The notes beneath the pieces are model-generated. The model did not search any database and was not told the origin of the DNA. It was given only the letters and a program-made list of their open reading frames with translations. From Oikopleura dioica (lineage: Eukaryota > Animalia > Chordata): a DNA stretch of 64,000 nt. How positions within the stretch are numbered: the stretch's first letter is position 1; the number at the start of each line of letters is the position of its first letter. Location: the NCBI GenBank assembly GCA_907165135.1, contig OU015568.1, positions 11,594,001-11,658,000 on the forward strand, in the 5' to 3' direction. The position numbers and the translations under genes were made by a program. Shown here piece by piece: positions 7,100 to 28,287 of the stretch.

Positions 7100-8813
7100 C
7101 GGGTAAGATTAAAAAAAGGAGATGGTACCTAACACAGACAGGATTCCCTACTTTGCAAAGGCTATCTAGACAAATAATCAACAATCATAGCGTTTTGGGA
7201 GTCGATCTTCGGACTCGATGGATGAAATACGGGGAAGGGGTCCCTAAAGCACGCAGTAACAAGAAACCGTACTTCATCCATTTGTGTTTAATCTTTTGAT
7301 GGGAGGCCTTGTAAGAGAATTGTCCCTTCATCCGCCTCGACCTAGAAGAACAGTTAGCAATTAAAAGAAGAATAAATTTTACCGTTTCACATTAATCGTA
7401 CAGGCACTGTTAGCAAGGGGATAGGATAAACCAAGTTCGCAATAAGCATTTTACGATCTCGAAGGTCCCCATCTTCATCGACGATCAGGCATCCGAAAGA
7501 TTTACGTACACGTCGGAATCATTCTTAAACGTTGAAATGTAAAAGATGTTTCTTCTATCTACAAGTCTTTATACTCAAAATTGAATGACAAAAACTGCGG
7601 GCACTCACATGAATTTTCACAACAAGATAAAGGTAAACAGCTAAAAATATTTTCTGCCTCACATTTTATAATAGTCTGATTTTGTTGACTATTCCTAAGA
7701 AATAAATTCAACATCACCTTACTAAGATAAATAGCAATAAATACATGTATTTCTTTGTTCAATATAACGATGTAAGAATCAAACTTCTCATCGACCACTG
7801 GAGAACCAGCGGACTCGTGTCGATGGAAGGCCTAGGAGCATTGAAATCTTCCTATAAAAGGTGCTAAAAAGGCGCAAAAAGTGTTTATGAGGAAATATGT
7901 TACATAAAAACTGTCGTGTGCCTTTCCTAAAGATATCAAGTCCGAGAAGAGTTGTCCGAGATCGACGCCACGGGGAAGGCTCCAGCCGATTGACGGTGTT
8001 ACTGGAAGCAATCTGAAACAAAAAGGCTTACTGTTGAGGATAAATGTATGAAGGGTGCAGCAAAGATCTATTCTGGGGGAAAGTCTCTTCTCTCGCTTTG
8101 GGTACTTATGTCTGAAAAATTAGAAAGGGTGTTGCCTCGATTCGGGCAATTGAACGAATGAAGCTGGTGAGCAGTCGGTCCACGTGTGCAGGAAAATCTT
8201 TACTGGAAGGTGATTCGTTGACAGCCAATTTTTGCATTAAAAAAGTCTCTAGATGGATGTTATCAGAGTCTGTCAGTCGCTGGCTGTTGCACCAAAAGAT
8301 CTCTAGACCAAATTGTTGATGCCACTGTTCTCGAAGCAGCAGCTTCGGAGCAGTTCCTGGGACACGAAGTAGTCAGTACGGTAAAATCCTCAGTCCGTGG
8401 TAGAGAGATCACTAAATCCGGAGATAGAAATGCGCAAAAGATAAAAACGCGTAAAGTCAAGTGAAGTTGTCAATCCAGAAAAGTGCCCTGGAACTCCAGC
8501 CGGATAAACGTGCACGGAGGAGATAAAATATTCCTTCCCCGTTTGCACAACACCATGTTTCATCGACTGTCTTTCAGACATTTGAATAGTAACTCTACCT
8601 CTGCAATTGTTTTTAATCATTTGCGTTTCCTAAACAGGTGTTGAAAAATATGAAACACCTGATAAGAAACCAGACGATGCGAAAAATTGTGAACCATCGA
8701 CAAATCTCGCAGCCAAAAAGTGTCAAACTTTGCTGAATTCTAGTGACTGCCTTGCGTATCCAGAATATATCTCCTGTCATAACTACCCGATCTCCCTTTA
8801 GAATAAATCTCAT
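7100..8813 (-). CDS. Probable fragmented multi-exon hypothetical gene
   Basis: Chain of short minus-strand ORFs separated by GT..AG intron-like segments (e.g. ~7342-7382); no recognisable domain. Confidence 0.25.
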
Positions 8814-23608: not shown

Positions 23609-26600
23609 ATGTTGGCGAAGGCAGGAACTTTATCCTTTTTGGCCTCGGTCAGCGCAGTAAACGTCGATGTATCTTCTTGCGTTGGATATACTGTCGAAGT
23701 AGATAATAACTACCGTTTCATTCATGAAGACGACTCATCAGTCACTATCCAGATTTTGAATGTGTTCAGCACTGATCCTCAGGTGAATTTCATCCACGTT
23801 AATTTTATATTTATTGACTAAGGACCCATCTTATCTCGGAGCAGATGGTGTTCTTCGCCTCACATTTCCATCCCTTCCAGCTATCGATTCTTATTCCTTT
23901 GGATACCCTATTGATAGCGTCACAGAGGACGGAAACTCTCTCAATTTCGAGCTAGCGGATGCTGCCGTAGGAAGCTTCATCCTCGCGTCTAGCTTTACTG
24001 CAAACTACGTTCTTCCTCGACCCCAGGAGCAACTAGTTCCATCAACAATGGAATACTGCCAGAGTACCGTGGAACCAACAGATCCACCACTGACCATCGA
24101 TTCTTGTATTCAGGAGAAAATGGACGCAAAATGTGCCCAAACAAATAAAGCTGCTTGTCCCAACTTTGAATACGCTAGGTTTAATATCGAGACCGGAAAA
24201 TATCGATGCTATGAAAGTGTTTCGAACGATTTCATCGTCAGCTCTTGCTTCGACTCTGAGAATAACCGAGTTGATTGCGCTTCTTATGGACCGGACACTC
24301 CATTTTGCAACCTTCCTAATCTCGCTGATATTCGAACAGAGGGTTGTGATGCTCCCCCAGAAGAGTGCTGTGTTGACCACACCGATGATATCACCATCTC
24401 CAACACTTGGGCATCCCAGTCTTGCAATAATCAGTGTATGACTTTGACCAGTACAAACACAGATTCATCTGCTGGAAAGAAAATCACTGTTCAGTTTGAT
24501 GATCTGGTCGAATTTCCATCCGTTCTTCCTTATCCAATCGACTTCGTTTCAAATCTAGGTGGTAACAAGTTTGAGATCAACTTCCTCGCCGACCAAGACA
24601 ATCCGATGTCATTCAACATCAATTTGGATGGACTTGCTTCTCAAGTAATTGAAGTCTTCGTTTGCGGTGAATGCGTTGAGACAACAACATCAACAACTGT
24701 TGCGTCGACAACAACGACTACTGAAGCTGGTCAGACAACTACTACAGGTGCGCCAAGTCCAGTTGGATGCTTCCCAGTTCCTGGGTTCAGTTACACGCAG
24801 GTCGAAAAGTGGCTCGAGGGAGAACAGTTCAAAATCTCAGCTGAGTTTGATGATGATGTTCATGCCAACTCTGGAATTCGAGATGAGAGCTACTTGAAAG
24901 TGACTTTTGACAATATTCCCGACGGAACAGATCTTCAAGCATACTGGCCATTCGAAACTGGTACCATCAGTGGAAATTCCATCGACTTTTCTGTGGTCGA
25001 TTATGTTTCAGGAACAAATGTCGCCAACCTTGAGTTTCAGCTTCGATTTTCCAGCCAAATTTCTGAATCTTTGACTCTGAACTCATTGGAAATTTGCCAC
25101 GAGAGCAGTCCAACTGAAGGGCCACCGATTACATCTCCCCTTACTGATAGTTCTTTCTGTGAGGATGCAACGCTTTCTATGAAACAAGCGTGGACTGCTC
25201 GCGGTTTCATGGATCTCTATCTTAATCACAATGTCCAAGAGACCTATGTCACTGGTGATTACATTGAAGTTGGTTTTGATGGACCTATTGGAGTCCAACA
25301 GGTCTACTATCCATGGTCTCAAGACCAGTTTGAGGATATGGGAAACAATATCTATCGATTTTTCATTGTTAACGGAGTAACCAACTGGACGGGATCAAAA
25401 GTCGATCATGTTTTCGGACAATTTAGTTTTGTTGGATCGGCAGAGCATTACCCTGACGTTCTCTGGACGCAGATCTGCGACAAAAATGGAGTTGATGGTA
25501 GCACAACGACAACTGTTGAACCCACGGGCCCACCCACTGGATGCCAAGAAGTAACAGTTACGCTCGAATCATCCTGGAGATCTTCTACTGGCGAATTCAA
25601 TATCGAGCCTTTTGTCGCTGATCCACCTATCACAAAAGATGGCTATCTTGATATTCAGTTCTCTGGCCCACTAACATTCACTTCGGTTTATGATCCCTTC
25701 AATGCAAATAATATGGAGGATCTCGGAAACAACAAATATCGCTTCTTCATGGATAGTAACGAATGGTTCCAAGGATGGTCAGGCGCCTTTGCAGGCATGG
25801 ATCCCATGGGCCAAGCGACTTTCTCAGGCGCGGCTGGTAATTTCCCTACTGCTGTCAGCGCTTCTATCTGTACTGGTACTGATCCAACAACTACTACACC
25901 TACTACAACAACCACAACTCCGACGACAACAACTACTACCACTACTACCACAACCACCTCAACTACTACTAAAACAACAACTACGACTCCAACAACCACG
26001 ACAACGACTCCAACAACCACGACAACCACGCCAACAACTACGACGACCACACCAACAACGACTTCAACGACAGATGAATCAACAACGCCATCTCCAGATC
26101 TTGTCTGCCAAGACGTTCTTGTTGCCGCCCAAAACTTCTGGACAGATGCAGGCATCGGCCAGGCGCAGTTTTACATCCAGTCTCGGGTTTTGGAACATGC
26201 TATTCCTAGTGATGGCTATCTTGAAATTGAGTTCAGCAAGGCAGTAACCGTTGAGGATTTGTCTCATCCTTTCGAAGAATCCGATCCAGCTGGACTTTAC
26301 AGCTACCTATCCGACTCCAAAATCAGAGCTCACTTCGACTCTACTGATTTCCCCGGCTGGACTGGTGAAGTTCCAGATACTTACTTTGGACTGATGAGCT
26401 TCGCTGGTGAAGCAACCCCAGAAAATCTTCCCTCCGTTCTTTCCGCAAAACTTTGTTTTGGTGATGATTCTTCTACTTCAACAACTGTTGGCTCAACGAC
26501 TACGAATGAACCACCAACGAATCCCCCAGGAATGACAGATGCTTCTCTCTGCGATTCCCTCGAGGTCTGGGTAGATTCATCTTGGGTCCAACGTGGATGG

Positions 26601-26915
26601 ATGAACATTCGCATGTCTAGCGATGCTCTCACAAGAAACTACGAACCGAACGACTATATCGAGATCCTTTTCTCTAAAGGCGTAACATTTGAGAGGGTAT
26701 GGAATCCACTGAAGGAAAGCCTCAATAAAGTTGAAGATCTTGGGGACTTCGCTCATCGATTGTTTTTCTGGTGGCAATTTCATGGATACACTGCACCTTC
26801 CTTTGAACCGGTATCTATTGCTCAACTGAGCTACACAGGTAACGCAGCGAATTACCCGGAAATTATTGCTGCTCAAATCTGCCCTAAATCCGCACTCCCT
26901 CCAGGTATTTTATAA
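23609..26915 (+). CDS. Large secreted modular protein (~1088 aa) with repeated Cys-bounded ~110-aa domains and Thr/Pro-rich linkers; candidate extracellular matrix or house protein
   Basis: Signal peptide MLAKAGTLSFLASVSA; single 40-nt intron at 23783-23822; four clear repeats (25158-25478, 25542-25871, 26106-26456, 26550-26882) and three more divergent N-terminal ones. Confidence 0.85.
25885..26085 (+). repeat. Coding ACN-rich repeat, poly-Thr/PTTTTTT mucin-type linker
   Basis: Direct translation gives PTTTTPTTTTTTPTTTT.... Confidence 0.9.
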
Positions 26916-27134: not shown

Positions 27135-28287
27135 ATGAAAGTTTTCGGAGGAGTTTTCGCCGCTGTTTCAGCTCAGTACTACCCAACTAATCAGTGGGGA
27201 AACCAATACCAAGGTACGAATACAGGATCAATAGGAGTAGTTCAACAACAACAGCAAGGTACGAGATAATACTAGTTAGACTTGTCGTATATTCATTTTC
27301 TAAATTTTTCCGTGATATATCCGTTTAGGTTCTCAAAACAGATGGGGTCAAGGTATGGGTAGCCATCTTCAGGAAGTCGTCGGTCCACATATCCCCGAAA
27401 AATGCTTCATGCGAGATGTTGACATTGACGGAAACATCTGGAGAAGCAACGTTGTTGCCGATGCTACTCGAGTTTATTCCGCTGCTGCTTGCCAGCAATC
27501 CTGCAAAGAATTCGTCAACGCCGGCTGCGAGTGGTTCGTCTGGGAGCGCGACTCAAACGAATGCACTTTGTACAAGGATATCGAGGAGATTGAACATGAT
27601 GTCGACAGCGACGTTAAGTTCACTGGCCCACGAGATGGTTGCCTTGGTTGCCACTTGGAAGGTTTCGATTTTTACCAACGACATGGACGTAACAGCCTCG
27701 TTGGCTATCAAAGAATCGAGACTGTCCAGGTAACACAGAAAGTGTGGAACGGCTCCTAAGAGATTCTAGAGCGTTTTTGAATGCGCGGAAATTTGTGAAT
27801 ACGCTGATGAGTGCGAATATGTGACCTTTGACAAGTCGCGCAAGTTTTGCTACCTTAAATCACCCGAAGCCCGCCGCTACCAAGAATCCAATCCCGATTT
27901 TGATAGCGCCGAAAGTGGATGCAGCAATTCTTACTGCGTCATGATGGTAAAATTGATATGTCAAGGCAATAGCGGTTTTATGAACGGTATTTTTAGAATT
28001 CTGAGCTCACCGATAGCATGTGGTCTAACTTTGACGTTGTAACTCGAGCACCAAATGGTGGTGTTGAAGGTGTCCGAAGCGTAAGTGTCTATATTATGAT
28101 GATGTAGAAATACTAATTTAAGGACGATGATTGCCACCGAATCTGCAGAAATGTGATGGACTGTGAATTCTGGACCTACGACACTGATGATCGTATTTGC
28201 TACCTTCTCAAAAATGCGGACATGCTCGAATATTCCTCGGACAAGATTTCTGGCAAGAAAGACTGCATCGTTCGACATGGACATTGA
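27135..28287 (+). CDS. Secreted PAN/apple-domain protein (three domains)
   Basis: Signal peptide MKVFGGVFAAVSAQ; CQQSCKEFVNAGCEWFVWERDSNECTLY; ECAEICEYADECEYVTFDKSRKFCYLK; CHRICRNVMDCEFWTYDTDDRICYLLK. Confidence 0.85.

Follow-up and report, generated by a model that had tools for sequence, protein, structure and literature searches.

The 64,000-nucleotide stretch of Oikopleura dioica DNA analysed here (the window; contig OU015568.1, positions 11,594,001 to 11,658,000) carries on its forward strand a gene whose two exons join in frame (Table 1) and encode a multi-module protein of 1088 amino acids. The mature form, computed from the joined exons, has a mass of ~117 kDa and an isoelectric point (pI) of 4.05; the 1088-amino-acid protein contains 13% Thr, 26 Cys, and one N-glycosylation sequon. 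Exons were joined only for numbering, mass, and pI, and sequence searches were run exon by exon, D1 likewise. The product looks like a secreted, acidic, modular protein with mucin-like linkers, and its extracellular form is probably heavily O-glycosylated. An earlier note on this DNA had described a secreted, modular protein with Thr/Pro linkers and a 3.1-kb uninterrupted exon. The signal-peptide-like start and seven modules on linkers agree with this description, as does the uninterrupted second exon. The ortholog in the Norwegian O. dioica reference (GCA_000209535.1) lies on scaffold FN653099.1 in a syntenic position, where an 84%-identical fragment was found. Exon 1, the signal-peptide-like sequence, and the position of the GT-AG intron are all conserved there, and the reference annotates only a 301-amino-acid “unnamed protein product” (CBY11890.1 / E4XQ04).

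Cys pairs delimit seven modules of 100–117 amino acids each, designated D1–D7, that belong to two related types: type A comprises D1 and D3, whereas type B comprises D4–D7 and the divergent D2 (B'). The overall order is A, Cys-rich insert, B', A, B, B, mucin linker, B, B. Pairwise comparisons of D4–D7 reveal 26–32% identity over 111–120 amino acids (34–59 bits), far above chance. D1 matches D3 with 31 bits, and in related proteins both also match the modules found in alternation with those of the D4 type. A hidden Markov model (HMM) built from D4–D7-type family modules, with D2 left out, finds D2 with an independent E-value of 2e-5, and jackhmmer agrees; the same HMM did not find D1 and D3. 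Direct comparison of the two types with hhalign gave a score of 33 (P 2e-5) over 97 co-linear columns; the highest of 30 column-shuffled controls scored 13.6. The count of four good and three divergent repeats in the earlier note was right, the divergent copies being related to the others at the profile level.

The repeat motif proposed in that note is likewise real and conserved in 26 non-redundant members of the family. Its first half consists of C1, W12, D34-Y35-x-E37-I/V38-x-F40, P52, and L61-G62-x-N64; its second half consists of R67, G76-W/F/Y77, G87-Q88-x-x-F91-x-G93, P99, and C107. C1 is present in 17 of 18 and C107 in 22 of 24 non-redundant members, and we infer a disulfide between these terminal Cys. 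An aromatic residue occupies position 12 in 100% and position 77 in 84% of members. The Cys-rich insert between D1 and D2 (~100 amino acids), for which no family match was found, is 87% conserved in the Norwegian ortholog.

The earlier note had proposed AlphaFold and Foldseek analysis of a single repeat; D4 was chosen, and the claims regarding fold cover its type, B. With an alignment of the seven window modules only, AlphaFold2 (AF2) returned a predicted local distance difference test score (pLDDT) of 74, and the weak Foldseek matches were already enriched in family 2 carbohydrate-binding modules (CBM2). From an alignment of 30 family sequences, AF2 produced an eight-stranded model with a pLDDT of 92.9 and a predicted template modelling score (pTM) of 0.83. 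The top Foldseek rows were CBM2 at probability 1.0 and a template modelling (TM) score of 0.5–0.6, namely 6bt9 (E 0.014), 2rtt, 3ndy_E, 2cwr (TM 0.57/0.61), and 6qfs (TM 0.59/0.60), none of the rows reaching E<1e-3. Comparison with the whole PDB revealed that the top 10–12 structural neighbours are all CBM2, aligned over the whole domain and ~2 Z units above unrelated rows, with 7–15% identity in the structural alignments. The D4 model is a beta-sandwich that can be superposed along its entire length on CBM2 domains of known structure, and we predict with high confidence that the B module adopts the CBM2 fold.

Table 1 Features of the two-exon gene in the window and insertions at its Norwegian ortholog (TIR, terminal inverted repeat; TSD, target-site duplication; MITE, miniature inverted-repeat transposable element)
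Feature	Position	Strand	Details
Exon 1	23609..23782	+	ATG at 23609, 58 codons; signal-peptide-like N-terminus MLAKAGTLSFLASVSAV...; D1 starts here, first Cys at 23678
Intron	23783..23822	+	40 nt, GT...AG
Exon 2	23823..26915	+	3.09 kb coding, uninterrupted; stop TAA 26913-26915
D1 (type A, across intron)	23678..24059	+	C24-C137, joined numbering
Cys-rich insert	24060..24365	+	Residues ~138-239, ~10 Cys; separates D1 from D2
D2 (divergent type B)	24366..24674	+	C240/241-C339/342
Thr-rich linker	24675..24767	+	Between D2 and D3
D3 (type A)	24768..25097	+	C374-C483
D4 (type B)	25158..25478	+	C504-C610; modelled module, predicted CBM2-like beta-sandwich, pLDDT 92.9
D5 (type B)	25542..25871	+	C632-C741
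Thr/Pro mucin-like linker, longest	25872..26105	+	78 amino acids, residues 742-819
D6 (type B)	26106..26456	+	C820-C936
D7 (type B)	26550..26882	+	C968-C1078; fastest-evolving, 61% amino acid identity to Norwegian ortholog
MITE-like insertion 1	L011:7439-7684 (~window 25790s)		246 bp, TIR CAGGCATATA, 8-bp TSD GTCTGGTC; inside D5
MITE-like insertion 2	L011:8350-8794 (~window 26430s)		445 bp, TIR CTGGGCTCGG, 8-bp TSD GCCTTCAG; at the end of D6

The family is rare. A profile built from the seven modules yielded 25 matches at E<=1e-3 in a search of 1.84 billion representative proteins (clusters). These comprise O. dioica proteins along with short sequences from marine metagenomes and from a transcript catalogue of marine eukaryotes; no ascidian protein is among them and none is clearly bacterial. 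One relative of 1025 amino acids has the module order A-B-A-B-A-B. A Tara Oceans contig encodes at least six B modules and one A module in different frames, which points to an intron-containing gene. In a JGI metagenome contig (P0022, L051:68-1204), a von Willebrand factor type D (VWD) domain (PF00094, E 1.7e-10) comes directly after two A/B-type modules, a fusion which suggests that some family members multimerise. Other candidates were rejected. A prokaryote-like adhesin with repeated 'VIKVTFSEP' modules (P0024, E 4e-4) matched only 28 profile positions, and the nearest ESM Atlas clusters, which are C-type-lectin-like (0.91) and share few features, were taken as chance. A word-indexed protein search with the whole exon was swamped by poly-Thr words and returned only the Norwegian ortholog fragment.

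Comparison with the Norwegian ortholog revealed that the gene is under purifying selection. The nonsynonymous divergence (Ka) is 0.08–0.14 in most modules and 0.30 in D7, synonymous sites are saturated, and the overall ratio of nonsynonymous to synonymous divergence (Ka/Ks) between the two O. dioica lineages is about 0.03. Both lineages also keep the neighbours: upstream lies a Myb-domain gene, and downstream a gene for a secreted-looking PAN-domain protein. The downstream gene (window 27136-27760, + strand) opens with an exon for a signal-peptide-like sequence, MKVFGGVFAAVSAQ..., and its PAN/Apple domain (PF00024) scores 27 bits; it may encode another secreted matrix protein. Two MITE-like insertions, neither of which is present in the window, break the Norwegian coding exon, and because of them the reference model is fragmentary although the exon in the window is uninterrupted. 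Each element can be removed in frame together with one TSD copy, the first as a GG-AG intron (7441-7694) and the second as a GC-AG intron (8342-8794), and the insertions could be spliced out as such non-canonical introns. A search of the gene's own genome revealed no second full copy, only a D7 fragment on another chromosome (G000:C4:5767114-5767415; L007:1498-1889). This partial copy spans the last ~100 codons, is frameshifted, lacks the upstream modules, and is probably a pseudogene fragment.

The cellulose-binding residues of CBM2a are W17, W54, and W72. Spacing, secondary-structure order, and the hhalign path place W12 and W77 of the family opposite W17 and W72 of Cellulomonas fimi CBM2a; position 53 falls opposite W54 by spacing alone. 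The hhalign paths were obtained with an alignment of 30 CBM2 sequences that consisted of 28 bacterial domains (from 34 loci fetched) and two O. dioica domains. They run co-linearly with the structural alignment: in CBM2, the W of “W-x-x-G-F” lies opposite W12, the terminal Cys lie opposite each other, and “W-N-G ... F-G-F-x-G ... P ... C” of CBM2 is paired with “W-T/S-G ... F-G-x-x-x-F-x-G ... P ... C” of the family. The fetched bacterial CBM2 domains begin and end with Cys, like the family modules.

Considering these results, we favour a model in which the gene encodes a secreted multi-module protein, its B modules having the CBM2 fold, that acts as a multivalent coat or cross-linker of fibrils; taken whole, the model has in our estimation an even chance of being correct. 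In this model, an aromatic-rich face of each module would rest on a crystalline beta-1,4 polysaccharide, putatively cellulose or chitin. Several such modules, held on extended glycosylated spacers, would then coat or cross-link the fibrils of the animal's extracellular matrix.

A number of results weigh against this model. The Pfam CBM_2 model (PF00553) did not match the 1030-amino-acid exon product or any of 30 family members at E<=10; the same model detects canonical CBM2 elsewhere in the O. dioica genome with 43 and 34.8 bits. Searches of PDB sequences with a single sequence or a profile yielded low-complexity linker noise or nothing. In hhalign, type B scored 13.3 against the 30 CBM2 sequences (P 0.09), a score reached by 2 of 30 shuffled controls, and the hhalign probability for CBM2 was <=2% throughout. 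At position 53, only 56% of members carry an aromatic residue. In the model's favour, type A scored 17.1 (P 0.023), reached by 0 of 40 shuffled controls, in a weak match that is co-linear over strands 1–3. A and B merged scored 16.1 (0 of 40 shuffled controls), and comparison with O. dioica CBM2 only gave a P of 0.035. The global mode of hhalign and a reversed-profile control revealed no significant CBM2 link. The profile–profile comparison with the 30 CBM2 sequences is marginal and thus does not establish homology to CBM2 or a bacterial origin. Thus, the CBM2 likeness proposed in the earlier note is partly supported: the predicted fold and the layout, including the terminal Cys, bear it out, but membership in the family is not borne out by Pfam or by profile comparison.

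The canonical Pfam CBM_2 domains of O. dioica are located at G000:C4:13489252-13489545, G000:C2:8044730-8044978, and G000:C4:11454403-11454600 (L012, L013, and L014, respectively). One of them is N-terminal in a glycoside hydrolase family 9 (GH9) cellulase, where it follows a signal peptide and precedes an acidic linker. A second follows a domain resembling lytic polysaccharide monooxygenases (LPMO-like), and the third is a weak match of 22.6 bits. All three are missing the terminal Cys pair of bacterial CBM2.

Comparison with known house proteins also weighs against the model. The house proteome reported in 2012 comprises 80 oikosins, 32 of which are without known domains (Hosp et al. 2012, PMC3390340). 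We compared by eye the opening 9 nt of every forward in-situ primer for oikosins 9–51 (41 primers, Table S3) with the sense-strand 9-mers of the Norwegian ortholog. No primer matched; only that for Oik36a shares a 9-mer with the ortholog, and it diverges at base 10. Nor does 117 kDa fit the predicted mass of any of oikosins 1, 2, 3, 8, 18, and 32 (256, 84, 67, 34, 26, and 47 kDa, respectively). Oikosins 4–7, the b–h paralogs, and reverse primers other than that of Oik41a lie outside this comparison. Oik41a, whose forward primer encodes poly-Thr, was considered as a candidate and rejected, since neither of its primers matched the window or the Norwegian locus with <=3 mismatches. Because of the lack of a primer match (oikosins 9–51) and the mismatch in size (oikosins 1, 2, 3, 8, 18, and 32), the protein is probably absent from the 2012 house proteome. 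The reference annotation, limited to the 301-amino-acid fragment, could have hidden it from mass spectrometry. The papers searched mention neither CBY11890 nor E4XQ04, and none describes a CBM2-like module for house proteins of larvaceans. The label of house protein in the earlier note is therefore a guess that found no support in the oikosin comparison.

It is possible, but in our judgement unlikely, that the modules are generic Cys-clamped beta-sandwich blocks of a matrix or adhesive glycoprotein that make protein contacts or serve as spacers and bind no glycan. The likeness to CBM2 may then reflect a shared arrangement of strands, which would be consistent with the failure of sequence and profile searches to establish CBM2 homology; the fusion of P0022 to a VWD multimerisation domain also fits this explanation. 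However, the closest structural neighbours belong to a single family and align over the whole domain with a clear separation from unrelated folds, the terminal Cys pair and aromatic residues occupy CBM2-equivalent positions, and glycan-binding proteins typically have several modules joined by Thr/Pro linkers, as here.

A less probable alternative has chitin, not cellulose, as the ligand of the modules. Among the nearest neighbours of known structure, over half are chitin-binding CBM2 from chitinases (6bt9, 8ose, 5xsv, 2rtt, 2cwr, and 5dhe), and the catalogued oikosins tested do not include this gene. Chitin synthases of O. dioica are expressed in perioral and giant Eisen cells (bioRxiv 10.64898/2026.03.31.715263), which also speaks for chitin as ligand. 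On the other hand, cellulose-binding CBM2a modules score equally well (3ndy_E, 8.9; 6qfs, 8.8; 1exg, 7.4).

Regarding origin, one can imagine that A and B are extremely diverged descendants of bacterial-type (Cys-clamped) CBM2, acquired in tunicates or larvaceans together with the bacterial cellulose synthase and amplified into a non-catalytic, multivalent 'scaffoldin', but we consider this improbable. Finally, a decaying or mis-modelled gene whose repeats have no present function might be read from the 301-amino-acid Norwegian annotation, the two interruptions of that locus, and the frameshifted D7 copy; such decay is highly improbable given an intact frame of 1088 codons, a conserved exon 1 and intron, the low Ka/Ks at saturated Ks, the in-frame removal of both MITE insertions, and the presence of relatives in a eukaryotic transcript catalogue.

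Tunicates are, to our knowledge, the only animals that make cellulose, and the gene may bear on the question of how larvaceans pattern cellulose fibrils into the house. Unannotated, lineage-restricted modules with a predicted CBM2 fold, present in seven copies on mucin-like linkers, provide a testable candidate for the attachment of protein to fibrils. If the modules bind as the favoured model predicts, they would represent a new and very divergent branch of a classic CBM family, and it would again be asked how far bacteria contributed to the cellulose system of tunicates. Should they also descend from bacterial CBM2, the family would be a second horizontally derived part of the animal cellulose toolkit, one that organises cellulose fibrils. 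If binding fails, the family would constitute a new larvacean matrix module.

Among known systems, the modules most resemble CBM2, as represented by Cex CBM2a of C. fimi (1exg, 6qfs), EngD CBM2 of Clostridium cellulovorans (3ndy_E), and the chitin-binding domains (ChBDs) of chitinases (2rtt, 2cwr, 6bt9). Both have Cys at each terminus, and both share aromatic residues at the W17 and W72 positions, a W-x-G ... F-G-x-x-x-G ... P ... C tail, and Thr/Pro linkers. Unlike CBM2 proteins, the product of the window gene contains no catalytic domain and unites seven copies within a single protein of an animal. Those canonical CBM2 domains that O. dioica has in its GH9 and LPMO-like genes differ from the window modules in being recognised by Pfam and in having no terminal Cys pair. 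Oikosins of the same organism are likewise secreted, glycosylation-rich, modular, and lineage-restricted proteins, 32 of 80 without a Pfam domain, features that the window protein appears to share; it is set apart from them by the lack of a forward-primer match (oikosins 9–51) and by a predicted mass of 117 kDa that differs from those of oikosins 1, 2, 3, 8, 18, and 32. Bacterial scaffoldins and multi-CBM cellulose-binding proteins provide the remaining parallel. The window gene differs from these in belonging to an animal, in its intron and mucin-like linkers, and in having no cohesin or dockerin system. It shares with these bacterial proteins a predicted tandem array of glycan-binding-type sandwiches on flexible Thr/Pro linkers, an arrangement that would confer multivalent avidity.
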